Part shown: positions 13,301-64,000 of the stretch, piece after piece | Numbering within the stretch: the first letter of the stretch is position 1 | Layout of the letters: each line of letters starts with the position of its first letter | Assembly: GCF_964204645.1 (NCBI RefSeq) | Contig: NC_134036.1 | Span: 5,672,600 to 5,736,599, forward strand | Source: Tubulanus polymorphus | Taxonomy: Eukaryota; Animalia; Nemertea | Direction: 5' to 3' | Length of the DNA: 64,000 bases | Made by a program: the position numbers and the translations under genes | The notes under the pieces: model-generated | Databases searched by the model: none | Seen by the model: only the letters and a program-made list of their open reading frames with translations | Told to the model about the DNA's origin: nothing

Positions 13301-13409
13301 GGTTCTTTTCTTACCGATCAACTCGTCCCTCAATCCCCTTCTTTATACAATACTGACAATCGATATGAAATCCGTACGAGCAAAAATTAAACGCGGACAC
13401 AAGAAATAG
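7376..13409 (+). CDS. GRL101-like LGR-type GPCR, copy 2 (~1943 aa)
   Basis: Exons 7376-8605, 8702-10030, 10137-13409 with phase-0 GT-AG introns. Signal peptide MLFGMEQRLRALFIASLIVCQVRIARA, CUB motif SGYIVSPNYP..C.W, then CTLD, LDLa, LRR and 7TM. Acceptor-like TCGCAG just before the ATG suggests an unseen 5' UTR exon. Confidence 0.92.
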
Positions 13410-20200: not shown

Positions 20201-23074
20201 AGCATAGATAAACAGTGCTATCAGATACTGACAGATTGGAACAAACATCGAGGTTTAGATATAAAAGCTGCAACAGAGATGTGTCATAGCATCCGTAGTG
20301 AAAAAGGCGAAATAACCGGTTACACAGAAAATGAAACAATGAACCTAATAAGAACATTTCACTATGAACATCAATATGGCTCTATACTGACAGTGACTAA
20401 TGTCAGACTGCTCGTTATAAACCCAATAATCACTAGAGATGAAATAACTTATATTCAATCAGTTAAATGGACGATGAAACAGTTTGATAATGCGACAGAT
20501 ACAGCGCATTCTGTTTTGTGTTCATACAATGTAACTGATGAAGAGTTAGCTTCTATAAGCGGTTGTAAATCGTGGCAGTTTAAATGTAACGATCAAAGAT
20601 GTATCAGCGACCATCGCGTATGTGATACCAGACACGACTGTCAACACGGTGAAGATGAACTCAATTGTACGGATATCAATTTACACAGCCAGTTTAAATG
20701 CAATGATGGTCAGATTATATCAATTAGTGGTTTCTGTGATTTCATACAGGATTGTGTGGATGGATCTGATGAGAAATCTTGCATTCATCCCACGTGTTTG
20801 TCCGCACAATTTCGCTGTATCAGCGGGCAGTGCGTCAGTAGGACTGACAGATGTGACGGATTGACTAACTGTAAAGACGGTTCTGATGAAATGGGATGCA
20901 CCACCCAACTGTGTCAGGGGTTCCTGTGTATCAATGGGGACTGTATCAGTTCTCAGTTATATCAGGATGGTGTCGTGGATTGTAGTGGAAGCCTCGAAGA
21001 AGATGAATTAGTAACAAATACTAATGTTACAGTGAATCCTACGGTTCATTGCAATGATGAAAACCACTGCACAACTAACTTCACAAATCTCTGTACGAAA
21101 TCTTATGAACAAAGATGTTCTTTTAATTCTCCTAATTGTTATTCAAGACGTCACAGATGTATTCTAGAAAGAATGTCAAATGGTTTCCCAGTTTGTAGAA
21201 ATCTTGAGCACGTATTGAGATGTGAAGAATTTGAATGTCCAGCTGGTACTGTAAAATGTCCTGCATCGTACTGTATACCGATCAGACAGGTGTGCGACGG
21301 TCAATCAGATTGTCCTAATTCGGAGGATGAACAAAATTGCGATACAATATTATGTCCCGGGATGTTTAAATGTGGTCAGGAAAATCGGTGCATTCCACAA
21401 TCTGACGTTTGTGACGGTTTCAAAAATTGTAAACATACAACTGATGACGAGGCTTTCTGTAACATCACGTGTCCTATAGGCTGTGGGTGCCAAGGTCATT
21501 TGGTCAATTGTGAAAATATTGGCTTCACAAATATTACTGGTCTTTTCTCGGCATCAACTCGAGTTTTGCTTTTGTCGAGCAACCAAATTCTTTTTAACAA
21601 GTCGACATTCCATTTACTCAACTATGTCTACGTTCTCAACATCTCCTCCAATGAATTGTTTCATATTTTACCCGAGTCGTTCTCATCCCTGCATAATTTA
21701 CATACATTAGACCTTAGAAATAACAACATCCCACTCTTGTACACGGATACTTTTATCGGTTTGTATAGTTTGAAAGAGTTATTCATAACTGAAAATCCAA
21801 TACGTCATTTAGCGGACGATGCATTCCAAGGATTGAACTCGCTGAATGTTCTTAATCTTCATGGATTTTCCTTATTTTTGCTTGGTAAAAATGTATTTCG
21901 AGGTTTATCTACATTACAGTCATTGAATATCAGCAACAACGGAATCAATCATATTTCACGATATGCTTTTTCGGGATTAAGAGAACTTAAAGTTCTCGAT
22001 ATGACCAAAAACTCTAAATTCATTTTCAAAGAAAGAGGCGTTTTCGACAATATGACATCATTAGTCTTCTTAGCGTCTGATGCCTACACATTTTGCTGCA
22101 TGGCTCCGAATGTTGACCAATGCCTTCCCGAAGCTGATCAATTTTCCTCCTGTTCTGATCTGATGGGTAACACAGTCCTCAGAGCTATCATTTGGGTGAT
22201 CGCTGCGTTCAGTTTCTTCGCAAACAGTATTGTCATTTTATTTCGTCTTCGATCAATTCGACTTTCATCCTCCGAAAAACGCAACACATCCTCTGACATC
22301 ATAATTATCAATATCGCAGCTTGTGATTTTCTGATGTCGATTTATTTGTTTTTGATCGCTGGAGCTGATTACGTTTTTACAGGAGTTTATTACCTAAATT
22401 CTGAAACTTGGACGGACAGTTCATTGTGTCGTCTGGCTGGAGTTACGGTCACTTTTTCCTGTGAAGGCTCATTGACATTTCTCTTTATTCTAACGCGTCA
22501 TAGGTTCTCAAATATCGTTAATCCATTTTCTGGAAGCCCGATTACATCTCCGAGATATGTATCCATTATTTGCTGTATATGCTGGTTATCTGTTGGTACT
22601 ATTTCTATAATACCACTGTCAACATTATCTTATTTCGGGAACAACTTTTACGGTACTACTGGAGTTTGTTTACCTATGAATTTGATTTCAATCGATGTTA
22701 AAGCCTGGCAATATTCATTCGCTATTTTCGCCATGTTTAACTCAGGGATTCTTGCTGCGATAATGGCGACTTATGCGCAAATGTACAGACTCGTTTCCGG
22801 AAGCAGGTCTGGTTCGGGTAGAGTTGATCCTACCGAACTAATTTTGGCACGTCGGAGTTTGGTGATAAATCTTTGCAATCTATTTTGCTGGCTGCCGTTG
22901 ATCATCGTTCAGTTTTGCGCGGTATTACGGGTAGAAATACCGAATCAGGTGGCGGCTTGGCTGGCGGTTCTTTTCTTACCGATCAACTCGTCCCTCAATC
23001 CCCTTCTTTACACAATACTGACCATTGATATGAAATCCGTACGAGCACAAATTAAACGCGGACACAAGAAATAG
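17212..23074 (+). CDS. GRL101-like LGR-type GPCR, copy 3 (~1886 aa; 57-aa in-frame deletion in exon 1)
   Basis: Exons 17212-18270, 18367-19695, 19802-23074. Near-identical to copy 2 except for a 171-bp deletion (junction near 18195) and scattered substitutions. Confidence 0.9.
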
Positions 23075-25217: not shown

Positions 25218-28200
25218 ATGTTGTTCGGTATGGAGCAGCGACTGAGAGCGCTGTTTATAGCGTCGCTGATCGTCTGTCAAGTTCGCATCGCGCGCGCTGA
25301 TGGCGCAGACTCTATCGAGGGATCGTCTGTGACGGTAAGTTCGTCTTGTAACAACACGTGGTACCCGCTAGATTCTACGTCCGGTTACATCGTTTCACCG
25401 AATTACCCGTCGTTAACGCGCGGTGTTGAATGTCGTTGGTTCGTCAACGGCTCTTTACCGGGAACTTTTCGCGTCCAAGTTCACTACGATATTGAGTTAT
25501 CAATATTCTGTAGTGATAACTACTTTCTCATCCGCGATTCTGATAACAGATTCTGTGGCGATGGAAAACATGAAATCCGCCGTAACAGCTCGATCTCGTT
25601 GATGTTTAGGAGTAACGTCGACGGTGCGCGAGGTAGTCGGGTTTATGTCACATATCGTTATGAACTTAGCCGATTGAGAATCACTCACAACTGCGGTAAA
25701 AAAAAATTGATGCTAATCAAACTACACACTTCGACTGGTTATAAATTCTTCACTAGAGCAGAACCTGATTGTCAGATGTTCATCAAATGGGTCGGAATTT
25801 CGCGTGGTTATGCGTTGAATCTCACATTTATTCAGATGATTTTTAAATCAAGACGCAATCCCCCAAAACCTATTCAAATCAATGAAGGTTGGAACAGAAA
25901 CAATGAACCGATAGCTGTTATACGAGAACAATCCGGACATCCAGCTTTATCGTTTTATACCAAAACAAACAAAGCCGTCATCTCTTTGCTAAATCCGTTA
26001 TTTACACTTCAATTCATGCTTTTAGTCCAGACGTACAAAATATCAGATTGGAACGTCTCTAATCCGTTGATTCAGATCTCTAATAACGAGTCGGGAGTGC
26101 TCATTCCCGATGACAACAGTTTACACGTAATAACTCGATCAAAACACTTACACTGCTGGTCTATCACAGTGCAGGTGTTACAGTACGTCGTCTTCAACTG
26201 GACACGTGATCTCGCCATATCCGGTGACGTCATTGGTATATATAAACAAGAAGGGTTACGCGTTGTAGGAACTGATATTCTACTCGGTTACAACTACCTG
26301 GAATCGCTGAGTGTCAAATCTGAAGGTTTTCTTGTCATACTGTGCGTCTTAATAAACAGGGAACTAACAGAATCACCGATAGATATGCACTTCAATGTGA
26401 GATCACTATCTGCAAAAGATGTATACGTCGCTTATCATTGGAATCTGGTGAGTAGGAAGTCAAATCGTTTTTTCAAATCCATCAGTAATAATCCTGAATT
26501 ATAATTTGACATGTAGACAATATATTTACAGGAAAAATTTCAACACTCCTGGATCGTATCTCCGGGATTGATTTTCCCACCATCGAAGACAGGGATATTC
26601 AGGTACAGTGTGAATACAATAATATTCGAACAGAAAGTTGATATTTATGAAGATAATATGGAACTAACAGTTTTATCAGAGAACTGCGAGCGAGCTGGAT
26701 TTTACATATTTGACGGTGGTAATTTCACGGCTAGACGATACGGTCCGTACTGTCCTCGCATGAAGACCCCATACGACCGTAACGTCGTCGGTCTGATTGC
26801 ATCAGGTGGATCGGTTACTGTTGTAGGATACGCTTATAACTGGAATCGCAAGTCAGTATTCAATGGTGGACTTTTAAGGTTTCGCCCTACGGACTGTGAC
26901 GGGTATGTTTTAAAGGAAGGAGAACGTCAGATCAATGTGACGTCTCACTGTCTGGTGATTACACCCGAAAACCGACGCCTTCCTTCGAGAAACGTTTATA
27001 TATTATCAGAACACGAATATCGAATTGACCGATGTTTTTTCGATGCGCCAACAACTTGCTTCAAAAAGTTGAAAATGAGCACTAAAGTTCTCAGTCAGGG
27101 CGTCGTGTTAAACACGGTATTTGTAATTAAAGGGAAGCCGTTTCGCACGTCACCGCTTATTGTAAGACTGCGTCATAAATGTCTAGCATCGAAAAGACCT
27201 GTCGAAACATTACAACCAAAAAGGGGCAAAGATCGTAATCTATCAGTAGATGAATGCGGATTGGTTCAATCACCCAACTACCCAGCATGGACAGAAAAAA
27301 CCAAAGTCACTTTATACTATACATTTAAAAACATGCGGAGACCAGGAAAGGAATTCGAATATTACAGATTCATCATCAAATTCATTGAATATGTTAGTTG
27401 CACAAAAAGCCTAGCTCATCAAAAAGATTCAGTAATTTTTATTCAACGAATGCTTTCCACAGGCATTTTGATTCGACGCGAAATATGCGGAAATATGGCA
27501 ACGATAGGACTTGTATTTCATAGTGTACACAATAATGATATGTATTTTGAAATAAAAAATTATGTTGCTATATTTCGAATTCAATACATTTTACGCCAGT
27601 CGTTCTCGATGGAGTATTCCAAGGGTGCTCACTGTCATCGAGGATTTCTATATTCGGGTATTTCATGCGTAATATACATCAGAGATCAACGTCTGAATTG
27701 GGAGAATGCTGAATTGTATTGTAGACAGAAGTACGCGGGACATCTACTCAGTATCAACTCAGAACAGGAGATGATTTCAATAAAAACATTATTCGCTACT
27801 AAACTTCGTAAACAAGCATATTCACAGAAGGAGCACATAACAATTATTGGGTTGAAATTGCAGGCAAGTTCATAACACTATTTTCAAGTTTCCAAAATTG
27901 ATATGGCATATTTTTCTTTTTCAATTTGTTTTATTTCCAGATCACAACAGGTCATTATATGTGGACAGATGGGAAACCATTGAGCTACACAGAGTGGTAT
28001 AAACCTACAAACAACGACACGATACCAGAAGTTATTCAAGGATTGATATCTCCTCTCAGAAAACAACCGATAAATGACGTCAATATGCCGTGTACGGCGA
28101 TGATACTGAATAATCCACGAGGATCAGCGAACTGGGTTCGATTCCCCTGCGAAATCGAAGAGGCTCACACGAGTTTCATGTGTGAAACTGAAAGAATCGA

Positions 28201-31200
28201 CATCGTGCATTGGCAGAATGCGATTGGAAATACATCAGTCGAAACATCCAATATAACAAACAACGAATCAGTTTTGCTTCACCAAAACGCATTTCAAAAG
28301 TTTGTTTCTAGCGAATCGAACTGTACGATTGGTTGGATAAGCATAGATAAACAATGCTATCAAATACTGACAGACTGGAACAACTATCGAGGTTTAGATA
28401 TAAAAACAGCGACAGAGATGTGTCGTAGCATCCGTGGGGAAATAACAAGAAGCAATTATACAAAAAATCAAATAATGAACCTATTAAATATATTTCACTA
28501 TCAACATCAATATAGCTCTATACTGACGTTGACATCCGATGACAAACTGCAAGTAATAAACCCAATTATCACTAGAGATGAAATTACTGATATTCAATCA
28601 GTTAAATGGATGATGAAACAGTTTGATAATGCAACCGATACAGCGCATTCTGTTTTGTGTTCGTACAATGTAACTGATGAAGAGATAGCTTCTATAAGCG
28701 GTTGTAAATCGTGGCAGTTTAAATGTGACGATCAAAGATGCATCAGTGACCATCGCGTATGTGATACCACACACGACTGTCAGCACGGTGAAGATGAACT
28801 CAACTGTACGGATATCAATTTACACAGTCAGTTTCAATGCAATGATGGTCAGGCCATATCAATAAGTGGTTTCTGTGATTTCATACGGGATTGTGTGGAT
28901 GGTTCAGATGAGAACTCGTGTTTTCATCCCCCGTGTTTGTCCGAACAATTTCGCTGCCAAAGTGGTCAATGTATCAGTAGCGCTAACAGATGTAATGGAG
29001 TCACTAATTGTGAAGACGGCTCTGATGAAGTGGGATGTACTGCTCAATTGTGTCAAGGGTTCCAGTGTAACAGTGGAGACTGTATCAGTTCTCAGTTGTA
29101 TCAGGATGGTGTCGTGGATTGTAGTGGAAGCCTCGAAGAAGATGAATCAGCAACAACTGCTAATATTAACCCTATTGAACTTTGCAATAAGGAGAACCAC
29201 TGTACTAGTAACTTCACAAACCTCTGCACGGTACCGGATGAACAGAGATGTTCTTTCAATTCTCCTCATTGTTATTCAAGACGTCACAGATGTATTCTAG
29301 AAAGAAAGAAAAGTGGTTTCCCAGTCTGTAGAAATCTTGAGCACGTATTGAGATGTGAAGAATTTGAATGTCCAGCTGGTACTGTAAAATGCCCAGCATC
29401 GTACTGTATACCGATCAGACAGGTGTGCGATGGTCAATCAGATTGCCCAAATTCAGAGGATGAACAAAGCTGCGAAAAATTGTCATGCCCAGGAATGTTT
29501 AAATGTGGTCTGGAGAGTAGATGTATTCCACAATCTAGGGTTTGTGACGGTGTCGTTAATTGTAAACATACAACTGATGACGAGGTTTTTTGTGACGTCA
29601 AGTGTCCCAGGCGTTGTAAATGTCAAGGTAGTTTGGTCGATTGTGGAAAAACGGGTGCAAAAAATATAACCGGTCTTTTCTCGACATCAACTCGAGTTTT
29701 GATTTTGCCGAATAACCAAATTCATGTCCATACATCAACATTTCGTTCACTAAATTATCTCTACGTTCTCAACATCTCCTCCAATAGATTGTCTTATATT
29801 TTACCGAAGTCCTTTTCAAACCTGCATAATTTATGTATATTAGACCTTACACATAACAACATTACATCCTTATCGACAAATACATTCTCCGGTTTGTATA
29901 GTTTGAAACAGTTATTCATAACTGAAAATCCAATACGTCATTTCGAAGACGATACCTTTCAAGATTTGAAATCACTAAAAGTTCTCGATCTTCACGGGCT
30001 TCTCTTATTGGTGCTAGGTAGAAATATATTTCGAGGTTTATCTACATTGCGGTTGTTGAATATCAGCAGTAACAGGATGCGTCATATTTCACGTTATGCT
30101 TTTTCGGGATTGAGAGAGCTTAGAATTCTTGATATAACCAAAAACTCCAAAATGATTTCGACAGAAAGAGACGTTTTCGAAAATCTGACATCTTTAGTCT
30201 TCTTAGCGTCTGATGCTTACAAATTTTGCTGCATTGCTCCGAATGTTGACCGATGCCTTCCCGAAGCTGATCAATTTTCCTCCTGTTTTGATCTGATGGG
30301 TAACACAGTCCTCAGAGCTATCATCTGGGTCATCGCTTCATTCAGTAGTTTTGTGAACGGTGGCGTCATCTTATTTCGTCTTCGATCTATTCGACTTACA
30401 TCCTCCAAAAACCGAAACACATCCGCTGATATCATCATTATCAATATCGCAGCTTGTGATTTCCTTATGTCAATTTATTTGTTTTTGATCGCAGTAGCAG
30501 ATTACGTTTATAAAGGAGTTTATTTCCTGAATTCTGAAACTTGGACGGAAAGTTCTTTGTGTAGTTTCGCTGGGGTTTTGGTGACTATTTCAAGCGAAGG
30601 CTCATTGACGTTTCTTTGTATCCTAACCCGTTATAGATTTTCAAATATAGTTGATCCATTTTCTGAAAGCCGGATTACATCTCCGATGCATGTGGCGGTT
30701 TTTTGCTGCTCATGTTGGTTAACTGTAGGTATGTTTTCTATAATACCGCTGTCACGGTTATCTTATTTCGGTAATAATTTCTACGGTTCCACTGGTGTTT
30801 GTTTACCTATGAATTTAATTTCTATTGATGTCAACGCCTGGCAATATTCTTTCGCTATTTTTGCCCTCCTCAACTCTGGCATACTAGCTACGATAATGGC
30901 AACTTACGTGCAAATATACAAACTCGTATCAGGAAGCAGGACGGGTTCGGGCAGAATCGACCCTACCGAACTGGTTTTAGCGCGCAGGAGTTTGGTGATA
31001 AATCTTTGTAATCTATTTTGCTGGTTGCCGTTAATTATCGTTCAGTTTTGCGCGGTATTACGGGTAGAAATACCGAATCAGGTGGCGGCTTGGCTGGCGG
31101 TTCTTTTCCTTCCGATCAACTCGTCCCTCAATCCCCTTCTTTACACAATACTGACTATCGATATGAAATCCATACGAGCAAAAACTAAACGCAGACAACA

Positions 31201-31204
31201 ATAA
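25218..31204 (+). CDS. GRL101-like LGR-type GPCR, copy 4 (~1941 aa)
   Basis: Exons 25218-26447, 26532-27863, 27941-31204. Intron 2 is GC-AG (CAG|GCAAGT at 27864). Same domain order as the other copies. Confidence 0.9.
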
Positions 31205-39705: not shown

Positions 39706-42053
39706 GGTCCAATGACGCATCTAGGGAGATTATTGAAACCCGTTCAAGTCCATCCAATTAATTGAGGAGTGCCTTTTTTATTTTGAAACTAGCTAAAATT
39801 GGTCTATTTCAGCGCTCCCTACATCTATCGTTGAGTAGAAAATACGCCAAATTACTGGATCACTTCTTATAAAACAACCGAAATTCAAACTTTACGTAGA
39901 AACAATATAGTAATTCTTATTTATTCCAAGCGCCAGTGACGAACTTATACGAATTCGTTCATCGAATTTAACGTTTTATCTCCTGAACTTACCTGTAATC
40001 TTTCGGTTTCGTCCCGATAAGAGGCACGAATTCTATCGGGCATCCATTTTGAATTATCGCCATCTGCAATGTAAAAAAAATTACGTAAAATTAAAGTTGT
40101 CTGATTTAGAGCTTAGATACCCATTTTAACCCTCGAGTGCTTCACCCCTGGAAATGTAAAACACATTTTATTTGTCTACGTCTATAGCTGTATACAGCGC
40201 TGATTCAGTATCAATTTCGAATGATTTGATTTGAGAAAAAAAAAATATATGTGTACATCAGGTTATAGATGATTGGTTAAAATGCTCAATTTATGGCCAC
40301 ATATACCTGTCGCCATCTATCATGAAAACTATGTGCTAAGTGTCAACCTATGTGGACATTCGAAAACCCCTGATAATTTTGTCACAAAACTGTCACAATT
40401 CTATACGGCCACGTCGCAAAAATATGAAAACATCTCACAAATGGTGATGAATAAACGGGTTGACGGATTGATAAACCTTGAGATAACGGTGTTGTCTATT
40501 CTAGAGAAAAAATCTAGGAAGTGCGTTACATGTTTGTACATTGTTTCAAGGGCTATCCTAGTATCACGGAAATAAGTAATTTTCTTATTTTTGTTCCACT
40601 ATTTCAAGGATCTGATTTACCAATTTCTTGTCCACTATGAATTTTGGCGTTAAACCACAATTGTATTAACGACATGTTTAAAGTTCATTACGGTATCGAC
40701 ACGGAAGTCACGGGCAGAGCATGACTTTCAAAATGCAGTACGAAACAAGTTCTTCGTGTACAAAGGCGTAGACTGTAATAAATATGCACAAATCAATTAC
40801 CGCTGTTGTGTCTTTTATGAATTGAGTTCAGGTTATGGGTTGCCGCTGTCATATGACCAGGGTGCCTCCGATGTCAGACAGCCCCCTACCTCACCCCCCC
40901 CCCTCCTCCGACTATAGATAGATAAAGTAGAGAGTCGTTAAGTGGTTGCTGACTCTACTCCTAACTTACAAGGTCTTCCGCTGTACGTACATCGGTTGGG
41001 TGCCTCTGCCTTAATTAGGCGTGTAATGAATGATCACGAGCCCCCAGACCTCTATCTCTGACCCGAACCCTGAGAACGATTTGTTTCATTGTCGTCGGTT
41101 GAGAAGTTGAAGAGCTCCCGACATCTTCGATTTCGGGGACGTCGTTGCCTATACGCAATACGTGCTGAACGCAGACTGTTATCCGTTTGTCGTCTAGAGG
41201 AATCAGCTTCTCAACAGAACTGAGATTTGTGCTATATTTTTCGAAGATAACAAGTTTGCCATCGGCTATACCATGATGAAAAGCATAAGCCCGGAAAACA
41301 AAATCTTTTGCCACGTACCACATTTTCGAAGTACCCTGCAAGTAAGTCGGGATGCATTTATGTGGGTCAAAAGGTGACGATCTTAGCGGCCCATCTCCTC
41401 AAAACTTTGAAAGCGCTGTGATTTTACTACAAAAGAACTTGAACTTATCATCCGTGAAAACCCCATAGTTCGGAATTAAAAACATATGAGCATTCTGTAT
41501 GATAAACATAAGCACGAAGGAGGATTTCCCAGGAAATTCCCAGGATTTCTGAGGCGAAATATACACCGGAATTCCTCGGTGCTAACGGGTCAAGAATACT
41601 AGCTGACCTGCTTCGTGTTCATGAGATACATTTTCTAATCTTTCTACATTTCTACAGACGTTTTGAATTATTATATTATGGCTCGTGCGTTACTAGCCGG
41701 AACGACGTGTTCTATGTAAGCGCGGTACATTAGCAAAATGATAAAAAACATCATATGATATGTGATATCAGGCGAACTCGAACGTTGCGAATTAATTTGA
41801 ACATTTTTAAAACATAATTGGACGTGGATATTTTCGACCGTTGGAAACATAAAACTGAAAATTCCAGCACAGATCCACGTTCGAGACAGAGCGAACACTC
41901 ATTAGAGCTAGAAAAAATAGTTGCATTCTAAAACTGATGAGTGAAGCAAACAATAAACTTCATGAGTAAGATATGTATTATTTATTTGAACTCGCGTATA
42001 GCAGTCTAAGATCTGTGGCCAACAGAACGAATGTCATTCCTCGCATCGTGTTG

Positions 42054-45000
42054 ATGTTGTTCGGTATGGAACAGCGACTGAGAGCGATGTTTATAGCGTC
42101 GCTGATCGTCTGTCAAGTTCGCATCGCGCGCGCTGATCGCGCAGACTCTATCGAGGAATCGTCTGTGACGGTAAGTTCGTCTTGTAACAACACGTGGTAC
42201 CCGCTAGATTCTACGTCCGGTTACATCGTTTCACCGAATTACCCTTCGTTAACGCGCGGTGTTGAATGTCGTTGGTTCCTCAACAGCTCTTTACCGGGAA
42301 CTTTTCACGTTCGAATTTACCACGACATCGAGCTTTCAATATTCTGTACGGACAGCTACATTCTCATCGACGAGTCTGATAACCGATTGTGCGGCGATGG
42401 AAAACATGAAATCCGCCGTAACGATTCGATCCCGTTGATTTTTAGGAGTAACGTCGATGGTGCGCGAGGTAGTCGGGTTTATGTCGTATATCGCCACGAA
42501 CGAAGCCGATTGAGAATCAGCCACGACTGTTCACGAAATCTTCGATTGAATAAACTCTACTCGTCAAACGGATATAAATTCCAAATAACAATATTACGTA
42601 ATTGCGGGCTTTTTTTCGAATGGACAGGATTATCACATAATTATGGGATGAATCTCACATTTATTCAGCTGATTTTACAATCATACCCTGCATATCAACC
42701 TGCGACCATTGTAATCCATGGCGGATGGAACAGCAGCAGTGAACCTATAGCTCTTATACGGGAACAAACCGGACATCCACCATCGTCATTTTATACTTAT
42801 ACAAATAAAGCCATTATCTCCTCGCTCCATCGCTCAATGGGCTTTCGATCACAACTTCTAATTCAAACGTACAAAATATCAGATTGGAACGTCTCTAATC
42901 CGTTGATTCAGATCTCTAATAACGAGTCGGGAGTGCTCATTCCCGATGACAACAGTTTACACGTAATAACTCGATCGAAACACTTACACTGCTGGTCTAT
43001 CACAGTGCAAGTGTTACAGTACGTCGTCTTCAACTGGACACGTGATCTCGCCATATCTGGTGACGTCATTGGTATATATAAACAAGAAGGGTTACGCGTT
43101 GTAGGAACTGATATTTTACGCGCTTACAACTACCTGGAATCACTGAGTGTCGAATCTGACGGCTTTCAAGTCGTAATGTGCGTCTTATTGACTGGAGCCC
43201 GAGCAAATTCCCTATTCGAAATAAACCTCGCAGTGAGATCATTATCGATAAAAGATGTACACGTCACAAATCATCGGGTGAGTATTAAAGTATTGCAATT
43301 CCAATTTACAACGCAAAAAACTGAACATACGCCACGCATAGACATTGATTTTATAGATACGAAATGAAGAAAGCTGGTTCATGCAAGCTCGCTGGATCTT
43401 TCCGTCATCAAAGAAGAAAACATTAACCTACAAGACAAGTCAATCAATATTCACGTGGAAAGTCGATATTCACGAAGTGAATTTGGAACTGACGGTTTTA
43501 TCAGAGAACTGCGAGCGAGCTGGATTTTACATATTCGACGGTGGTAATTTCACGGCTAGACGATACGGTCCGTATTGTCCCGGCAATTACTACGGACGGT
43601 CTGTCGTCAGTCTGATTACATCAGGCGGATCGGTCACTGTTGTAGGATACGCTTATAACTGGGATGATCAGTTAACAGTCGGCGAGACATCATATCTCAG
43701 ATTTCGTCCTACCGACTGTGACGGGTACGTTTTAAAAGAGGGAGAACGTCAGATCAATATGACGTCACACTGTCTCGTGATTACACCCGAAAACCGGCGC
43801 CTTCCTTTGAGAAACGTTTACATATTATCAGAACACGAATATCGAATTGATAGTTGTTTTCGTGACAGGAAACGACCTTGTCCTCGAGCATTAACGATTT
43901 CTAGTAAACTTCTCGCTGAAAGCATCGTGTTAAGCACGGTAGTCACGGGCGGTCGAAGATATTTCCTGACAACCCAACTTATGGTCAAACTTCGTCATAA
44001 ATGTCTAGGTTCGAAGAATCATGTTGACAAATTGGTGTTCACGGTAAGCAGAGTTCCGATAACAGCCAAGGACGAATGCGGACTGGTTGAATCACCGAAC
44101 TATCCGGCAAGGGCAGGACGTACATCGATGTCTTTATACTACACTTTTACCAACGCCCGACCACGCAATGCATTCCGATATTACAGATTTATCATTAAAT
44201 CTATAGAATCGATTAGTTGCACCGCAAATATCTTTATGGAAAAAAGCCCGATACTTTTCATTCAGGAGATATCCTGGGCGAAAATTCGAACCTATCGTCG
44301 TGTCACGATATGCGGAAATATGGCGACGATAGCAGTTGTATTTCACAGTTTATACGAAAATCAATTGTATTTTGAAATAAAAAATATTATTGCAAAATTT
44401 CGAATACAATACATTTTACGCCAGTCGTTGGCGATCGAGTATTCCGATAAGGTTCGTTGTGAAAGTGGATTTTCGGATTCGGGAATTTCATGTGTAAAAT
44501 ACATCAGAGATGAACGTCTGAATTGGGAGAATGCTGAATTGTACTGTAGACAGAAGTACGCGGGACATCTACTCAGTATCAACTCAGAACAGGAAATGAT
44601 TTCTGTTAAAAGGTTATTTGCTACAGAACTTCGTAAAGAGGCATATTCAAAGAAAGCCCTCGTAATGATGATTGGATTAAAACTGCTGGTAAGTTCACGG
44701 TGTTCCTAGACCTTTTTTTCCGAACGGGGTTCCACACCACTACTGCCAGTTCAAAGTTCATTGAAAATGAATCAAGTTTCACTACGTATAACTGAGTGTA
44801 TTGTAACGCCATCTGGTTTATGCCGATACACCATTGATTCAGTAGATATTTGTTTCTATTCATCATTTTTAGCCCAAAACCGGTCATTACACGTGGACTG
44901 ACGGGAAACCATTGAGCTACACAGAGTGGTATAAACCTACAAATAACGACACGATACCAGAGGTTATTCAAGGATTGATATCTCCTCTCAGAAAACAACC

Positions 45001-48000
45001 GATAAATGACGTCAATATGCCGTGTACAGCGATGATACTGAATAATCCACGCGGATCAGCGAACTGGGTTCGATTCCCCTGCGAAATCGCAGAGGTTCAC
45101 ACGAGTTTCATTTGCGAAACAAAAAGAATCGGAAAATTCGCAAATTGGAAAAATTACATTCGAAACATAACAGTTGAAACATTAAATTCCTCAAAAAACG
45201 ACGCAATTTTGGCCCATGAAAACACATTTCACCACAATGTTCTTGATGATTCGAGCTGTACGATTGGTTGGATAAGTATAGATAAACAATGCTATCAAAT
45301 ACTCACAGACTGGAACGAACATCGGGGTTTAGATATTAAAACTGCGACGGAGATGTGTCATGACATCCGTGCTGAAATAGGTGAAGTGAAAGCCCGTTTT
45401 ACGGAAAAGGATACTATGAGCTTGATAAAAACATTTCACTATCAACATCAATATAGCTCTATACTAACGATGACTTCTAATGACAAACTGCAGGTTATAA
45501 ATCCAATAATTACTAGAGATGAAATTACATATGTTCAATCAGTTAAATGGACGATGAAACAGTTTGATAATGCAACAGATACAGCGCATTCCGTTTTGTG
45601 TTCATACAATGTAACTGATGAAGAGTTAGCTTCTATAAGCGGTTGTAAATCGTGGCAGTTTGAATGTAACGATCAAAAATGTATCAGCGACCATCGCGTA
45701 TGTGACACCAGACACGACTGTCAACACGGTGGAGATGAACTCAATTGTACGGATATAAATCAACACAGTCAGTTTCACTGCTATGATGGTCATGCGATAT
45801 CAATTAGTGGTCTCTGTGACTTCCTACAGGATTGCGTGGATGGTTCTGATGAAGAATATTGTTTTCATCCCCTGTGTTTATCTGAACAATTTCGCTGTAA
45901 AAGTGGTCAATGTATCAGTAGGTCTAATAGATGTGATGGAGTCACTAATTGTAAAGACGGCTCTGATGAAAAGAAATGCACTGTTAAACAGTGTCAGGGA
46001 TTCCTGTGTAACAGTGGAGACTGTATCAGTTCTCAGTTGTATCAGGATGGTGTCGTGGATTGCAGTGGAAGCGTTGAAGAAGATGAATTAGTAACAACTA
46101 CTAACGTTACAGTGAATCCTCCGATTGAGTGCAATAATAAGAACCTCTGTTCGACTAACTTCACAAATATCTGTGCAAAACCTGATGAACAAAGATGTTC
46201 TTTTAATTCTCCTCATTGTTATTCAAGACGTCACAGATGTATTCTAGATAGAATGACGAATGGTTTTGCAGTTTGTAGAAATCTCGAGCACGTACTGAGA
46301 TGTGAAGAATTTGAATGTCCAGCTGGTACTGTAAAATGTCCAGCATCGTACTGTATACCGATCAGACAGGTATGCGATGGTCAATCAGATTGTCCTAGTT
46401 CAGAAGATGAACAAAACTGCGAGACATTTTCATGTCCAGGAATGTTTAAATGTGGTCAGGAAAATCGATGCATTTTACAATCCGAAGTTTGTGACGGTGT
46501 GGTAAATTGTAAATACACAACTGATGACGAGGCTTTCTGTGAGGTCACGTGTCCTATGGGTTGTAGGTGTCAAGGTCTTCTGGCCGATTGTGGAAATACC
46601 GGTCTTACTGATATTACTGGACTTATATCGGTATCAACTCGAGTTTTAATCATGTCGAATAATCAAATTAATTTCAACAAGTCGACATTTAATTCACTCG
46701 CTTATCTCTACGTTCTCAACATCTCGTCCAATGGATTGTATCGTATTTCACCAAACTCGTTCACAAACCTGCATAATCTACATACGTTAGATCTAACACA
46801 CAATAACTTAACATCGTTATCCGTAAACACCTTCGCCGGTTTGTACAGTTTGAAAGGGTTATTCTTAACCGGAAATCCGCTGCGATATTTAGAAGAAGGC
46901 TGTTTTCAAGATCTGCAGTCCCTTCTAAGTCTTGATCTTCACGGACTTTTTCTTGTCGCCTTAGCTGAACATGTTTTTAAAGGTCTATTCTCATTGAAAT
47001 CTTTAAACATCAGCGGCAACAACATTTTGTATATCTCAATATACGCTTTTTCAGGGTTAAATGAACTCACAATACTTGATATTACGAAAAATTCGAAAGT
47101 TATCTCAGTCAAGCGAAACGTCTTCGACAATCTGACGTCATTAGTCTCCCTCACGTCTGATGCTTACAAATTTTGCTGCATGGCTCCGAATGTTGACCGG
47201 TGCCTTCCCGAAGCTGATCAGTTTTCCTCCTGTTCCGATCTGATGGGTAACAAAGTCCTCAGAGCTGTCATCTGGGTAATTTCCGCGTTCACCTTCGTTT
47301 CGAATAACGTCGTCGTTTTCTTTCGTTTTCGATCTATTCGAATTTCGTCGGGTGAATCGCGTAGCACATCGTCCAACATCCTCATTATCAATATCGCGGC
47401 TTGTGATTTTCTGATGTCGATTTATTTGTTTTTGATCGCGGGAGCGGATTACGTTTATAAAGGAGTTTATTTCCTGAATTCAGAAACCTGGACGAACAGT
47501 TCACTCTGTCGCTTCGCTGGTGTAATTGTGACTATTTCTTGTGAAGGCTCGTTGACGTTTCTTTGTATTCTAACACGGCATAGATTCTCGAATATCGTTA
47601 ATCCATTTTCCTCGAATCCGCTTACATCTCCCAGATACGTGTCGATTATTTGTTCGCTTAATTGGTTAATCATAGCAACATTTTCATTAGTGCCACTGGT
47701 AGGGTCTTCTTATTTCGGAGAGAAATTCTACGGAACTACTGGAGTCTGTTTACCTATGAATTTAATTTCAATCGATGTCAAAGCCTGGCAATATTCGTTC
47801 GCTATTTTTGCCGTGTTTAACTGTGGCATACTCGCTACGATAATGTCGACTTATGCCCAAATGTACAGATACGCATCCGGAAGCAGGGCAGGTTCAGGTA
47901 GAGTCGAACCCACCGAACTGGTCTTAGCGCGCAGGAGTTTGGTGATAAATCTGTGTAATTTATTTTGCTGGCTGCCGTTAATTACCGTTCAGTTTAGCGC

Positions 48001-48163
48001 GGTATTACGAGTAGAAATACCGAATCAGGTGGCGGCTTGGCTGGCGGTTCTTTTCTTACCGATCAACTCGTCGCTCAATCCCCTTCTTTACACCATTCTG
48101 ACTATCGATATGGAATCCATTCGAGCAAAAACTAAACGCAGACAACATCGAACAGACAAATGA
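42054..48163 (+). CDS. GRL101-like LGR-type GPCR, copy 5 (~1948 aa)
   Basis: Exons 42054-43277, 43357-44688, 44873-48163 with phase-0 GT-AG introns. Same signal peptide and domain order. Confidence 0.9.
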
Positions 48164-50089: not shown

Positions 50090-52331
50090 CTAATAATCGG
50101 AAGTTGCGTATACGGAATTCCTCCAGGGGCTTCCACATATTTCTTTCGGGTTTCCAGCGCACTTCATCCGGCATTGAGATTTCGGCACTGGACCGTACTT
50201 GCCGACACGATTGCCGCAGAAACATTCCGCACTATACTGAAGTCCGGCGAACATAAATTCTGGATGAAAAAAAATCTTCAAAGATAATAGTGCGAGTATG
50301 CTTTTGTTGGGAATCGGGTAACGATATTCACGGGAGTTATCAACACAGGCTGAACGGGAGAGGGGGCTCAAGTTAAGACGATTTGGATGGCACCCACAGA
50401 ATCTGACACAGCTCCCTGGTAGATCATGAAAACTGCGAGCGCGTCCTTACCTTTTTTCTTACAAATACCGATACACTTCCCGATTGTCATAGATTTGTCT
50501 GAGTTTGCAGCATAGGTCGTCAAATCTCTGATTTTGCGGTCTTCAAAACATCCGACGTAAGTCCGACATCCCGATGTCATATTTCCGTTGTCTGGAATTC
50601 GAATGTTTGATCGTTGATTAATGTATTCATAATGAGCTACGTTTTCGAGCGTTTACTGCTACGTGTGACTCATAGGTGTCTGGGGCCATCGGTCACGGTT
50701 ATTAGAACAAAACATATCTAATATATTCTTCTCTTATCCCCTCTTATAGCCCTTTTTTGATATTATTTCATTGACATTTAAATATATGTGTTTATCCATT
50801 CATCGCGTATAAACTTAACATGAAAATGAATCATATCATATCATTACGTAACATGGGTTACATTGCGTGATCGCGCTAAAAACCAAAGTTATCTTTGAAA
50901 AAAGCCATGCGAAATATTGAAATACGCGTGTATTTGCCGGTTAGGACATTTCTTGGTTATTTCATTCGGTTTCGAAATTTTAGACGAATCTAAATAGGCT
51001 AATCGGGGATGAAGATAGAAACTAATGATATCTGTCATGAAAATTATTCATAACAATAAAATGCTAAAATGAAAAAAAAAGAATGGAAAACAGTGATTAG
51101 AAACTGCTTGTGGAACGTATCGAATTAAAACGTTAACTATGCAAAATTAAGGGGTTCGGAAACTATCAATTCTAATATCATTCTTTCGTGTGCGTCAGCA
51201 AGAAGGAACCGTCGAGTTGGAAAAGCACGCACACTGCAACCGGCTCTCCGAAGTAATCAATGAATGTTTTATTCAGTTTGGTGATCAGTGAATGTTTAAG
51301 GTGCTGGAACCAATTGAAGCCATGCAGGCAAATGGTTAAAAAATCGTTGAAAGCCCAATTCAATCCTAACAATTATTTGCCGAATAACAACGGAAACCAC
51401 TTTACCACTCGAAACTGGTGAATACATTTTCTATTAGGTAGCTACAACAAATCACATTTATATTTGCATATCTTCGATTATAATATACATTTAATCCTCT
51501 TTTCTGGCTAGAGACAAAGTACGATGCTGAAATAATTTGCAACGTGTCACTTTAAAGTTTGAGATAATTTTGAAAACGCCTACGATGTTACAGAGAAAGA
51601 AAATGTTTCCTTGAATAGAATCGCGATATTTCGATGATTGGGGCTGAAATAGGAAAAATCGGTGGTCGATTGTCTGAAAATTGAATGTATCTATAATTGC
51701 TATCATTTCCCCAACTCGTTACATGTGTACAATGTATTTCGAGATACCAATCAAGCGATGATTAACTTTTTAAATTTCAAATTCTCTCCATTGCTGTTCA
51801 GGAACAGCGTCATATCGCTACCACATGTAGATCCACATTCAAAATAGATTACATAAAACTGCAGACAAAGAAGCCCAGCCAATCGGAAAAAAAAATTAAT
51901 TTGATTTAGTGTAGCCCCAAGAATCCTGAATACCATAACTGACATAGAATAATGCGATGATTAAAAGTAAAATCATAACTCTGACGCATGATGAGATATT
52001 CGATGGCTAAACCTTATTGAGAATCCCAGTAGATTGCATTTTATTGACATTTTCCAAATGTACTATATCGTATTGAAATTCATCAATTAGAAATTTATAA
52101 AGTAATGAAGTAGAAGATATATTAGTACGATTAAAGTAAACACAACGGTCGTTTATTCAAGCACACTTAAACTCGAACTAAACTAATATCACATTTGAAC
52201 TTACCGTCGTTAGCCGGCGTTGTCGTGGTGCATAACAATTCAGGAACTCGCGTTCGAACCGGTTCTGAACGTGACGTCACGTATGACGCCATCATCAGCA
52301 GCACGGCTCCCAGTGTTAGTAAATAACTCAT
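50090..52331 (-). CDS. Small secreted WSC-domain protein (~145 aa)
   Basis: Exons 52331-52205, 50591-50451, 50259-50090 with phase-1 GT-AG introns (438 nt). Signal [16 protein letters not shown]; WSC motifs [47 protein letters not shown]. Confidence 0.88.
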
Positions 52332-60539: not shown

Positions 60540-61140
60540 GAAATCATCTTCTTTCTGTTTCTAAAGTTTCTTCTGTATGCCCCTGGCACTAATTCGTAAG
60601 CTTTGATTATGATTGGTTTTACAGTATCGTAATCAGCACTTGGCTCCGTTGACAGAACTGAGCAACAGTGCTTTTGCCAATTCTAAGTAGCAGCCACTTT
60701 CTCGAAATGAAGAAAATACTTATCCGCATCTTTTTCGATGATCTTCGGAACCATTCGTATCCGTCTGGGGACATCAAATACCGGTTGAAGAACGACGTGT
60801 TGATAATAATCGAATTCCATCTCTTGTTGTAGCTCAATCTCACGAATTCTTAGTTGAAATTGTCGTGCTTGTCTGAAATTGTTGTTCTAGACGTCTAACT
60901 TCTAGAGATGTGCCTTCAGCTCGTTCCGAACATTTCACAGAGGAAATAATTTCGTTAGCGGCAATATATTCAGACACCGCAATCGGGATTTCTTGCTCTT
61001 TAAAGTTTGACTCAATATTCGGACGTTCGAATCGGTTTTTTTTCGATTTGATAATTGTAATAGATCAGTTTTGAGCGTACGCTCAAACAAATCCAACGAC
61101 GGGCGGACGAAAGAGGGATGTACTATATCAGCCGACAAAT
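60540..61140 (-). mobile_element. Decayed Gypsy (Gmr1-like) LTR retrotransposon gag fragment
   Basis: - strand frames give FDVPRRIRMVPKIIEKDADKYFLHFEKVA and IIKAYELVPGAYRRNFRNRKK, recalled hallmark motifs of this gag family, broken by stops and frameshifts. Confidence 0.75.
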
Positions 61141-61723
61141 CAGCTATGGTTGTAATACAAAAAGTCTGACGGGGACCAAGGTAATAGATAGCGCAGTACC
61201 TTTGGCTCGGGAGTTCATTCGAACCAGTACAAAACTGATTCAGTTTCCCGGGCGAACACTCAATTTCTGTTACGGTCAGAAAGAACCACGACGAAACCAG
61301 CTACAAGACAACTCGTGGCATTTCACGATACAATCACGTAGTATATTTTCAAGTACTAACTTTAATGAACTCCCGACAGAACAAGACGTCCTGGTAATAT
61401 TGCAGATCGATGACATGCGCAGATATCCATGAAACAGGAACGGCCAATACTGCCCAGAACAATTCATGCAATACAATATTGAATGTGCGAATAACAAATA
61501 TTTATTTACACTTTTTATCTATAACAAGTACGTTACAAAGGGTCGGTCTAATGTTTAGTATTCCAAAGACAGGCTATACGAATCTAGGACAAAAACAGGT
61601 GGGAGTGTAACCTAAAGGTCACCTATAGGTCATGATCTCACATTTTGGAGGCCGGAAGGGCAACAGCCACGCAAATTTATTGTTATCAACTATTTATTTC
61701 TTATAAATTTCACTGGACACTTT

Positions 61724-63344
61724 TTAAGGAACATAGGTTGAATGGTTTAATCGAATATTTGGAGTAGTTAGGGACGGCTGAGAACTATCATATAGTTGGT
61801 CCCCATCCACCGCCACCAGATGAAGCCACGATTTACGGTTGGTTTCCCCGTCGGTTGTCTCCGGCAGAACTCGACGCCTATCGTCGACGTCACCGTCACC
61901 CTTTGCTCGTGGAAATCCCGGGTTTTCTTCGACTTCGACGACGATTGCTGCCGGCACGAGCCCCCCGCTATCGTCCACGACGAATCTTCGACCGGTGCGA
62001 GGACAGACGAGGTCGGTGGATAGTTTATCGCATTTTTCGTTGACCCAGCCACGCTGTACGGCTGGGTTACCGTACACGAGCGCGTACGCTTTCACGTCCT
62101 TGGTGACGACGGCGCCGGCTCCGATCATCGCGTACCGGCCGATGCGCACGCCGCACACGACCGTTGCGTTGGCGCCGATCGTCGCGCCGCGCTCTACGAC
62201 TGTCGATTCGGGTTTCCAGTCTCTTTTTTCGGCACGGGGATGGCGATTATTGGTGAATGTGCACGACGGGCCGCAGAATACTCCGTCCGCTAGCGTCACG
62301 TAGCGGCAGACGCTGACGTTATTCTGCAGTTTGCAACCGCGCCCGATTGTGACGCCCGCATCGATGTACACGTTCTGACCTAGTTGACAGTCGGGACCAA
62401 TAACAGCGCCGGACCTTACTTGCGAATACAGCCAGATTTTTGTGCCCGATCCGATTTTACAGCCTGGTTCCAATACGGACGTCTCGTGCACGAAGTAATC
62501 GTGTTTGCTTTCCATTCGTAAATCCTGGACTCGAACCCGATGACGGAAAACATCTCGTCTTTCATAACAAGTGACGTTATCGAAGTTACCTTCGTCGAAT
62601 TGGGCCCGATTCAAATATTCGTCGATTAGGCGCCAAGAACCGTCCGATTCGAGAGACTCGTGCGCCAGTTCCAAGAGGCACAATACATCGATGCCGAGAT
62701 CGTCCGGCGCACACGACTCCGTGCTTCCGTCGCCATAAGACACGATCGCCTTCGCGAAAGCGGAGTGCTCCGATTTCAAAGGCTCCTCTACGCAGCAGGG
62801 GACGAAAAAACCACCATCGCTAGCGTCTGGAGTACCGGTCAACGAAAATCTCACAGCGTCTACGTCGGAGTCGGTCGGGTAGAATTTTAGTTTTTTGCTC
62901 CAAGGCTGCCCGTCGTCAAACACAAACGCGCCTGCCTTACCGTTGACCACGATTTTGTGTCCCTTGACTGGATAATCCCAAATCATCGTCGACGTGGTTT
63001 TCAGGCCGGTGCCGTCGCCGAACTCCATACGAATATCGACCTCTTGCGAGAGGCCCCTTGTCGTTTGACCGACCGCTCTGAGTCGCAGGGGCATGCGACC
63101 GCCGGCTACGGCCAGTATGACGTCGATATCGTGCGGTTCCATACGCCAGTCAACACGATCGGTCGTGTCCGAGCGGTACCAGTAGGTTCGCACGGTCGTC
63201 ACGTCACCGATCGCGCCGCTCGAGATCGACCGCAACATCGCCTGTACGGCGTTGTGGTGTAGCATCTGATGCCCAGTCGTTACCAGCAGACGGCGTGAGT
63301 CGGCTCGACGCACCAGTCTCCTCGCTTGCGCGTACGACAGAGTC

Positions 63345-63376
<32 letters not shown>

Positions 63377-63622
63377 TCGTAACGCCTGTTCGGCCAGGTC
63401 GTAATGGCTGCGGTCAGGCGTGGCGATGACCACAGCGTCGACGGAATCATCGGCGAGCATCTCGTCCAGGCTGTAAACGGCGACGCCCGGGTGTGTTCGG
63501 CGAAATGACGCGACGGTCGCAACGTCCCCGTCGCATACGCCGGCCAGCGAGCCGCGCTCGATCAAAACCCGCACGTGGTTCTTACCACAGTAGCCGCAAC
63601 CTATCACTCCTATTCTCAACAT
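61724..63622 (-). CDS. Bifunctional Gfo/Idh/MocA NAD-dependent sugar-nucleotide dehydrogenase + left-handed beta-helix N-acetyltransferase (WlbA/WbpB + WlbB/WbpD-like fusion), ~632 aa
   Basis: Uninterrupted ORF. N-terminal domain: Rossmann GVIGCGYCG, VVIATP, HVLVEKPM, PHDID. C-terminal domain: YFVHETS..IGSGTKIW..CQLGQNV..CKLQNNVSV..VFCGPSCTFTN..PR..GATIGANATVVCG..IGRYAMIGAGAVVTKDV..GNPA. Likely start is M at 63622, just after an acceptor TTTCAG; AATAAA at 61698-61693 and 61681-61676 on the - strand. Confidence 0.88.
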
Positions 63623-64000
63623 TTCGCTTCTTTGCCTGAAATAGTACGATGATGAAATATACAATATCCGCATGTCATGGATTTTCCTCGTAGAATTAAA
63701 ACGGGCTCATTATCTAGTGAGTGGGATACGGCGCCGACGACGTTCTTTTCGCGCGCAGTGCTGAGCGACGAACAAAGTTCGCACGAATCGAGTTGGCCGC
63801 TAACGCTGCGCGGGTAACACTCCAAATCCCGTCTTGAGATTGAGCGAACTCGCAGTTAGGCTGGGTATCGACGATGCGAAAGACATAAAGCGAAATGAAA
63901 CGGGATGTTACAAATTAGCCTGAAATGTACCCCTGTTTTTACTATTTCGACGTTTACTTACATATCCTCGAACTAGACGATCAATGCCTGTGTACGATGC

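Follow-up and report, generated by a model that had tools for sequence, protein, structure and literature searches.

WlbB of Bordetella and WbpD of Pseudomonas aeruginosa are the N-acetyltransferases that act on UDP-GlcNAc3NA (uridine diphosphate (UDP)-2-acetamido-3-amino-2,3-dideoxy-glucuronate) in the five-step pathway to UDP-ManNAc3NAcA (UDP-2,3-diacetamido-2,3-dideoxy-mannuronate) (PMC10622841). Here we describe a gene of the palaeonemertean ribbon worm Tubulanus polymorphus whose product joins an acetyltransferase domain of this type to a sugar dehydrogenase domain. The gene lies on the minus strand at the end of a stretch of 64,000 nucleotides (contig NC_134036.1, forward-strand positions 5,672,600 to 5,736,599), which as a whole is called the window below and is numbered from its first letter. 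Its acetyltransferase half aligns over the whole chain of WlbB (PDB 3mqg), but differs from WlbB and WbpD in being fused to a dehydrogenase and in having WLYSQ in place of the motif WHxxH. The best solved relative of the dehydrogenase half is GnnA of Acidithiobacillus ferrooxidans (7bvj/7bvk), at only 22-24% identity. GnnA is a UDP-N-acetylglucosamine (UDP-GlcNAc) 3-dehydrogenase that feeds the synthesis of GlcN3N (2,3-diamino-2,3-dideoxy-glucose) for lipid A, and is not known to be fused to an acetyltransferase. WlbA and WbpB (3q2k, 3q2i), the 3-dehydrogenases of UDP-N-acetylglucosaminuronate (UDP-GlcNAcA), belong to the same superfamily and carry out the same kind of reaction; their match to the worm protein is weaker and partial.

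The same two domains occur in the same order in fused proteins of bacteria, including Holospora obtusa (P0070), Candidatus Odyssella thessalonicensis (L036), Azospirillum spp. and metagenome-assembled genomes (MAGs) of Alphaproteobacteria. More than 100 such collinear fusions of about 520 aa, from Alphaproteobacteria MAGs, Holospora, an Acanthamoeba endosymbiont, Azospirillum and others, are the closest proteins outside Tubulanus, at 38-41% identity and 86-90% query coverage. Because collinear two-domain proteins are so widespread, with hundreds of bacteria having one, the fusion of dehydrogenase and acetyltransferase is, by sequence comparison, a bacterial invention that the worm inherited. 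The worm gene differs from the bacterial fusions in its spliceosomal intron, its longer interdomain linker and a 60-aa stump that in its paralogues continues to a DegT domain; its dehydrogenase is also far more diverged and keeps 68% of the near-invariant positions. The window gene is a nuclear worm gene descended from bacterial DNA, which agrees with the bacterial origin proposed in the original prediction, made from the DNA letters alone. On balance, the locus is probably best explained as a bacterial-descended nuclear gene that is a truncated paralogue and is predicted to encode a working enzyme.

Transfer from bacteria to animals is established in several cases, such as tunicate cellulose synthase (PMC13390645). 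As in those cases, a bacterial gene of carbohydrate metabolism has become fixed in an animal genome, with introns and duplication; what sets the present case apart is that several steps of nucleotide-sugar synthesis came over as a module, which was then fused and has diversified as its copies lost domains reciprocally. The protein families were already known, as was bacterium-to-animal transfer as a kind of event, and RefSeq already gives one of the paralogues the automatic name “aminotransferase-like”; in the literature we found no paper describing this transfer or an analysis of a Tubulanus genome. New are the presence in an animal of a whole module for three nucleotide-sugar steps, the fusion of this module into a single spliced gene and the reciprocal loss of domains among the copies. 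To our knowledge, few cases of a bacterial metabolic gene entering an animal genome are well supported, and fewer still concern a whole multi-step module. Three consecutive steps of a bacterial nucleotide-sugar pathway now lie in an animal chromosome, and the welding of operon neighbours into one spliced gene offers a route by which an operon can be expressed in a eukaryote.

Gene and transcript structure

The minus-strand open reading frame (ORF) at 61724..63673 is 649 aa long from its first ATG and 632 aa long from the ATG at 63622. The coordinates of the gene and of the other features are given in Table 1. Spliced genes were searched as single-exon references (window:61727-63622:- and L011:3490-5925:-) or as the database proteins P0001-P0003. 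The gene had been described as intronless, which holds for the ORF itself but not for the gene, where an intron splits the start codon.

Contigs of four public runs (X1, X2, X3 and X5) were aligned to C12:5733700-5739600 (L015; window position = L015 position + 61100). A single X1 contig joins 63635 to 63962 and skips the 326 nt between them (L015 2534/5 to 2861/2). On the plus strand the joint is bordered by CT..AC, which corresponds to GT..AG in the direction of the gene. The splice context is ...GAGGATAT/GTAAGT at the donor and TACTATTTCAG/GCAAAG at the acceptor, with exon 1 ending in ...GAGGAT AT/GTAAGT. The database model of the window's own product, P0001, is 637 aa long and starts with MQRSEMLRIGV; the upstream exon must therefore provide AT, and the acceptor exon G CAA AGA AGC GAA ATG. 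Since the X1 contig, the canonical splice sites and the database model concur, the splice at 63635/63962 is credible. The acceptor ...TACTATTTCAG, predicted 13 nt upstream of the ATG at 63622, is credibly in use at 63635/63636 with the start codon split, and the 5′ intron that had been proposed as a mark of domestication is present at exactly this acceptor. The 130 nt at the 3′ end of the intron retain homology to the paralogue cp2, which starts at window 63765.

The profile of run X1 is RNA-like, with high depth in exons, low depth in the intron and spacer, and none downstream of the gene. Four mismatch-free X1 contigs lie along the coding region (L015 441-1015, 1235-1566, 1551-1899 and 1870-2310). 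Both of the AATAAA hexamers predicted after the stop codon are present; they are not the sole 3′ end in use, because an X1 contig passes both and continues 135 nt beyond the second, to 61541. A downstream splice at 61541 was considered and rejected: the continuing letters map to C1:9551300 and the break falls at the edge of a dispersed repeat, and we read the join as an assembly-graph chimera.

Table 1. Features of the window and copies of the gene family in the Tubulanus genome (window coordinates unless another contig is named; UTR, untranslated region).
Feature	Position	Strand	Evidence or remark
Exon 1, 3′ end (5′ UTR and AT of start codon)	63962..64000	-	Exon extends past window end
Spliceosomal intron, 326 nt, GT..AG	63636-63961	-	Pyrimidine-rich acceptor TACTATTTCAG; splits start codon AT/G
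Coding part of exon 2	61724..63635	-	G of split ATG, QRSE, 632-codon ORF, stop 61726-61724
Gfo/Idh/MocA NAD-dependent sugar 3-dehydrogenase domain	62588..63622	-	Residues 1-345; Pfam, PDB match
Interdomain linker	62501..62587	-	Residues 346-374; alignment; longer than in most bacterial fusions
WlbB/WbpD-type left-handed beta-helix N-acetyltransferase domain	61955..62500	-	Residues 375-556; 3mqg match, Hexapep
Remnant of paralogue linker	61773..61954	-	Residues 557 to ~617; alignment to cp2/cp3
Last 15 codons, private to window copy, from sequence past breakpoint	61727..61772	-	No cp2/cp3 homology
Two AATAAA hexamers in 3′ UTR	61698-61693 and 61681-61676	-	26-48 nt past stop
Window copy	C12, window 63622-61724	-	Dehydrogenase and acetyltransferase present; aminotransferase lost after 61773
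cp2	C12, 1.4 kb past window end	-	Dehydrogenase, acetyltransferase and aminotransferase present
cp3	C12, 7.7 kb past window end	-	Dehydrogenase, acetyltransferase and aminotransferase present
C3 copy, P0002	G000:C3:21951718-21955922	+	Dehydrogenase without EKP lysine; aminotransferase present
Low-copy dispersed repeat, just downstream of gene	60904-61537	.	Own-genome DNA search; copies on C4, C3, C1, C2, 73-88% identity
WSC carbohydrate-binding domain, exon-sized ORF	50093-50371	-	E 1e-12; downstream of transferred gene, same strand
Five tandem single-ORF receptor genes, ~1080-1120 aa	2000-5236, 10044-13409, 19709-23074, 27926-31204, 44912-48163	+	Last one with LDLa, LRR and 7TM domains

Domains, motifs and predicted fold

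The ORF scan, Pfam and alignment agree with the original prediction that the 632-aa ORF combines a dehydrogenase with a hexapeptide acetyltransferase. Pfam places GFO_IDH_MocA at residues 2-118 (PF01408, E 1e-28) and GFO_IDH_MocA_C3 at 127-233, followed at residues 375-530 by Hexapep (E 4e-20) and Hexapep_2 (E 3e-12), the repeats of the left-handed beta-helix. The dehydrogenase motifs GxGxxG (here GCGYCG), EKP and PHD are all present; the catalytic Lys91 of EKP and His164 and Asp165 of PHD occupy invariant columns and are retained in the window copy, cp2 and cp3.

Two peculiarities that had been pointed out earlier are real. The loop YWYRSDTTDRVDWRMEPHD is shortened, by 2 aa relative to the paralogues and by 3 aa relative to bacteria, and the dehydrogenase loop 146-162 is strongly diverged. 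In the acetyltransferase, KIWLYSQ stands at the site of the bacterial KIWHFSH. The substitution H398L in this WHxxH motif is common to all worm copies, while H401Q is found in the window copy only; the two histidines may have roles in the acetyltransferase. The other conserved acetyltransferase residues are mostly retained, including N458, R463, R467 and the GANAT, FTN and PRA..R stretches.

In the AlphaFold model, the predicted local distance difference test (pLDDT) score is 85-97 as far as residue 150 but falls below 50 at residues 152-160. Scores are again below 50 in the linker (341-381) and in the linker remnant (residues 557 to about 617). The model supports two folded domains with a disordered linker at 341-381 and a disordered tail at 561-632.

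The paralogue family and the loss of the aminotransferase end

Searches of the worm's own genome found exactly four copies of the family: the window copy, cp2, cp3 and a copy on contig C3. The database proteins P0001 and P0003 come from the same 11.5-Mb contig and P0002 from a 27.8-Mb contig. cp2 and cp3 are tandem 6.3-kb units, 97% identical, on the same strand as the window gene. The first exon of each has 812 codons and encodes the dehydrogenase, the acetyltransferase, then some 100 aa of linker and the beginning of a DegT aminotransferase dependent on pyridoxal phosphate (PLP). The rest of the aminotransferase is encoded by two more exons, and the canonical introns before them, both of phase 1, are about 310 and 430 nt long. 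Two canonical introns were confirmed in the DegT part of cp3. The intron positions in the DegT part are common to the C12 and C3 copies, and the introns are therefore older than that duplication.

The DNA of the window copy is 88% identical to cp2 from 63765, within the intron, to 61773, where homology ends 46 nt ahead of the stop codon. Its first exon has no homology to the region upstream of cp2, and the 64-kb window contains no DegT remnant. This copy is a 3′-truncated tandem paralogue. The original prediction held that a C-terminal tail of about 70 aa had been gained. The first 60 or so residues of this tail are, however, homologous to the paralogue linker between the acetyltransferase and DegT domains; the tail is therefore a linker stump, not gained but left over from the loss of the aminotransferase end.

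The C3 copy has an intact aminotransferase. Its acetyltransferase is deleted save for the last 30 or so residues, and its dehydrogenase has ETP for EKP and has lost several further invariant residues; judging from these changes, this dehydrogenase is probably dead. We note that the domain losses in the C3 copy and the window copy are complementary.

The window gene has a GC content of 52-62% along its length, against about 40% in its flanks; overall its GC is 57% and its GC at third codon positions (GC3) 64%. Across all four copies GC is 57-59% and GC3 64-67% in the exons, while the introns, at 32-35% GC, and a neighbouring gene, at 38% GC3, look like the host. The paralogue exons thus show no amelioration, even though the oldest copies, those on C3 and C12, have a synonymous divergence (dS) of 0.75.

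Selection on the window copy

The window copy is under purifying selection, with a ratio of nonsynonymous to synonymous divergence (dN/dS) of about 0.4. In a pairwise comparison with cp2 the ratio is 0.37 at a dS of 0.26; taken singly, the dehydrogenase (0.32) and the acetyltransferase (0.28) lie below this value and the tail (0.63) above it. On the branch of the window copy, taken for the dehydrogenase domain with the C3 copy as outgroup, there are 25 nonsynonymous and 20 synonymous changes, giving a ratio of 0.40 (p = 0.0025 versus neutrality), which is not above that of the cp2/cp3 stem (0.43). Of the near-invariant positions (at least 90% conserved in prokaryotes), 109/160 (68%) are kept in the window copy, the same as in cp2/cp3, and the losses are concentrated in the dehydrogenase loop 146-168.

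Several observations weigh against reading the window copy as a spliced gene for a working enzyme. The splice is supported by one contig, with 29 letters on its shorter side, from run X1, whose type is unrecorded, and run X5 (a 2015 run with the same species label) gave no contigs at this locus; the spliced RNA expected at 63635/63636 was thus found in run X1, whose profile is RNA-like, and not in run X5. W12C in the glycine-rich loop, R148W and H401Q are private to the window copy at positions invariant in 54 prokaryote and fungal rows, E221G affects a near-invariant position in the window copy only, and a further deletion of 2 aa before the catalytic His is likewise confined to it. The worm dehydrogenases have a median identity of 33%, versus a median of 53% and a minimum of 39% for prokaryotic pairs. 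The best NCBIfam model for this half, NF040723 (archaeal UDP-GlcNAc 3-dehydrogenase), scores 85.8 bits against a cut-off of 450, compared with 142 bits for the bacterial fusion P0005. Going by these sequence differences, the dehydrogenase half may have changed substrate or may be losing activity.

The window copy could on such grounds be a transcribed but functionless partial duplicate turning pseudogene, with cp2 and cp3 as the real enzymes, and the private changes and the extra loop deletion would fit this. The aminotransferase end would then have been lost as the tandem array grew or as the downstream repeat arrived, which is consistent with the truncation at 61773, the makeshift 15-codon end, the dispersed repeat just downstream, the higher dN/dS of the tail and the first exon without homology to the region upstream of cp2. 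However, a 632-codon frame has remained intact at this distance from cp2, its own branch has a ratio significantly below neutrality and not above that of the cp2/cp3 stem, and as many conserved positions are kept as in the intact copies. Its splice site is in working order, and the coding region is covered by contigs of the RNA-like run that have no mismatch. We therefore consider decay of the window copy rather unlikely, and loss of its end in the course of such decay similarly so.

Predicted activities and substrate

The enzyme steps, the substrate and the cooperation in trans that are set out in this section are drawn from knowledge of the protein families. The original prediction identified the two halves as WlbA and WlbB. 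The second assignment agrees with our results: residues 376-551 match chain positions 4-186 of WlbB 3mqg (E 9e-48), and the acetyltransferase half shows 55-63% identity to bacterial enzymes named wbpD-type, which stand alone and are about 190 aa long. The first does not, since the dehydrogenase is nearer to GnnA 7bvj. GnnA (7bvj/7bvk) is matched at E 6e-21, with a template-modelling (TM) score of 0.85-0.86 (target) and a root-mean-square deviation of about 3 Å between the folds, while WlbA 3q2k matches the Rossmann part only (residues 2-160, E 1.6e-17) and the match of WbpB 3q2i is weaker. When the bacterial fusion P0005 is used as query, GnnA again ranks first (E 2e-29), and no WlbA or WbpB entry is listed at E <= 1e-10. 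By sequence and modelled fold, the dehydrogenase appears to resemble GnnA more than WlbA/WbpB.

It is conceivable that only the acetyltransferase half works, the dehydrogenase serving as a scaffold or acting on another substrate, with no 2,3-diacetamido sugar made by the bacterial route. The acetyltransferase half of the worm copies lies within the bacterial identity range, whereas the dehydrogenase median lies below the bacterial minimum; seven bacterial-invariant positions in the loop before the catalytic His are changed in most worm copies, differently among copies, and the C3 copy is without the EKP lysine. Against this, Lys91, His164 and Asp165 are kept in the window copy, cp2 and cp3, the dN/dS of the dehydrogenase is one that we deem no higher than that of the acetyltransferase, and the Rossmann half is modelled at high pLDDT. 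We regard this explanation as improbable, and return to an enzyme in which both halves are predicted to work.

Of the pathway partners named in the original prediction, a WlbC/WbpE-type DegT aminotransferase was found, fused within cp2 and cp3 and also in the C3 copy. A WbpA-type UDP-sugar 6-dehydrogenase was not: a bacterial operon query gave no match to one in the worm's own genome, a blank that is no proof of absence, and a search with PF03721 found a single multi-exon UDP-sugar 6-dehydrogenase gene, on C5. A 2-epimerase (PF02350) was likewise not found in the worm's own genome, with the same reservation. A remnant of the bacterial 6-dehydrogenase was also sought in the worm linker and cluster and was discarded, the best matches having E >= 0.09 and lying in unrelated places. 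The uronate product proposed in the original prediction is doubtful, because the dehydrogenase is closer to GnnA and no WbpA-type 6-dehydrogenase or 2-epimerase was found; the non-uronate product UDP-GlcNAc3NAc is at least as likely. The ancestral bacterial pathway, on the other hand, was by analogy probably the uronate one, because the closest bacterial relatives all carry a 6-dehydrogenase nearby, and this counts against the non-uronate product. We note that the substrate of the dehydrogenase may have shifted from the uronate to UDP-GlcNAc itself, an idea we put forward because no 6-dehydrogenase came along with the module. In this case the module, without its 6-dehydrogenase, would act on UDP-GlcNAc, and the substrate loop would have been remodelled.

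The protein would be cytosolic. Its N-terminal half would oxidise C3 of UDP-GlcNAc, or less likely of UDP-GlcNAcA, with nicotinamide adenine dinucleotide (NAD). The resulting 3-keto sugar would be aminated in trans by the PLP-dependent domain of the neighbouring paralogues, and the beta-helix half of the window protein would then acetylate the 3-amine with acetyl-CoA, to give UDP-2,3-diacetamido-2,3-dideoxy-glucose or its uronate. We propose only tentatively, and with less than even confidence, that the worm makes bacterial-type 2,3-diacetamido-2,3-dideoxy sugars by means of this bacterial module, with the work split among the paralogues by reciprocal domain loss. Equally tentative is the allocation of the work, in which the window copy would supply dehydrogenase and acetyltransferase, the C3 copy aminotransferase, and the tandem neighbours all three. 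Possible carriers of such a sugar are mucus and secreted products. Should the enzymes be active, this nemertean would make sugars so far known from bacterial O-antigens and archaeal glycans. The family also offers a natural experiment on how a dehydrogenase substrate loop evolves once the upstream enzyme is missing.

Phylogeny and gene order

All four worm copies fall into a single clade (support 100) in the maximum-likelihood (ML) tree built on the dehydrogenase and acetyltransferase domains. This clade joins the two-domain genes of the Alphaproteobacteria MAGs L034 and L035 with support of 96-97 in the Shimodaira-Hasegawa-like approximate likelihood ratio test (SH-aLRT). The worm copies are thus a clade inside the bacterial fusion family tree, as expected under the transfer originally predicted. 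In the DegT tree, the worm domain is nested among the DegTs that adjoin bacterial fusions.

Fusions of all three domains (GFO + Hexapep + DegT, 890-955 aa) occur in Acidimicrobiales and Actinomycetota MAGs. We also note a protein of the fungus Alternaria tenuissima, P0151 (AA0119_g8852, 909 aa), which combines a dehydrogenase, a hexapeptide acetyltransferase and a DegT domain and is not the sister of the worm proteins in either tree; from its sequence it may represent a second, independent acquisition by a eukaryote. The prokaryotic three-domain fusions and P0151 have the domain order of cp2 and cp3 but belong to other clades, and in the two-domain ML tree the worm clade is not grouped with any three-domain clade or with P0151. 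Because the worm copies group with two-domain alphaproteobacterial genes, the worm three-domain fusion looks, on this sequence evidence, independent of the prokaryotic and fungal ones.

A DegT gene is present within the 6-kb flanks in 73/80 species-representative bacterial loci, and mostly starts no more than about 100 nt from the end of the fusion gene. Since DegT is usually next to the fusion, the three-domain order in the worm mirrors the bacterial gene order. A UDP-sugar 6-dehydrogenase gene is found nearby in about half of the bacterial loci, including all of the closest relatives, in which it sits between the fusion gene and DegT. One such arrangement (fusion gene, UDP-sugar 6-dehydrogenase, DegT) is seen at 10001-14094 of L017 (Alphaproteobacteria MAG RFOF01000001.1), a polysaccharide locus with Wzy, flippase, glycosyltransferase and Bac_transf genes. 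From the phylogeny and the gene order, the donor would probably have been a proteobacterium, and the donated segment would have carried a ready-fused dehydrogenase/acetyltransferase gene with the DegT gene that follows it. The two reading frames would then have merged in the worm lineage into one three-domain gene. The 5′ intron and two more introns, both within the aminotransferase part, would subsequently have been added to this gene before it was duplicated.

The stem branch of the worm clade is very long, at about 2.6-3.5 changes per site, and the DegT tree gives a polytomy, which makes a donor from any one bacterial group tentative. Together with the shared architecture of P0151, the long stem might suggest an ancient eukaryotic gene that was inherited vertically and lost in nearly all other animals. 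This we consider very improbable: neither tree places P0151 as sister to the worm clade, the worm clade lies inside bacterial diversity, the exons keep a foreign composition, and, apart from P0151, no eukaryote outside Tubulanus is among the proteins listed in three database searches. No other animal is among the listed matches of the three protein searches (348-1106 aa; three-domain length; fragments of 103-327 aa), a negative that rests on protein database listings, other nemertean genomes having been outside the direct search.

Genomic setting

DNA-like contigs of two samples cross the 3′ edge of the gene (X2 at 57-765 and X3 at 1-765 of L015, with the stop codon at L015 624), and this continuity, called for in the original prediction, argues against a chimera. 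Bacterial contamination or an assembly chimera in the worm scaffold, although the GC and GC3 of the gene against its flanks and the missing X5 coverage would fit it, is barely credible in view of the spliceosomal intron within the start codon, the four paralogues with AT-rich introns on two chromosome-scale contigs, the contigs of two samples that bridge the gene into worm repeat and unique flank, and a nearest bacterial protein merely 41% identical to the window protein.

The gene shares its 11.5-Mb contig with an array of G-protein-coupled receptor genes and a WSC-domain exon, both in the window. The receptor ORF that was domain-searched, 44912-48163, has four LDLa repeats, leucine-rich repeats (LRRs) and a rhodopsin-type seven-transmembrane (7TM) domain, and is LGR/relaxin-receptor-like. 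The earlier view that the gene sits beside animal genes and a Gypsy relic is thus borne out as far as the animal genes are concerned (the LDLa-LRR-7TM receptor and the WSC exon); the Gypsy relic was not confirmed, retroelement family matches being absent from the nine ORFs tested between 49.5 and 61.4 kb. Each receptor ORF is preceded by ORFs of 410-460 aa, of which the one tested, 41973-43364, was without a Pfam match. Away from the cluster, an AT-rich ORF of 352 aa at L033:1123-2178 (minus strand; G000:C1, near 15338704-15339186) matches DegT_DnrJ_EryC1 at E 1e-24, and may on this match be a further sugar aminotransferase-like gene of foreign origin.

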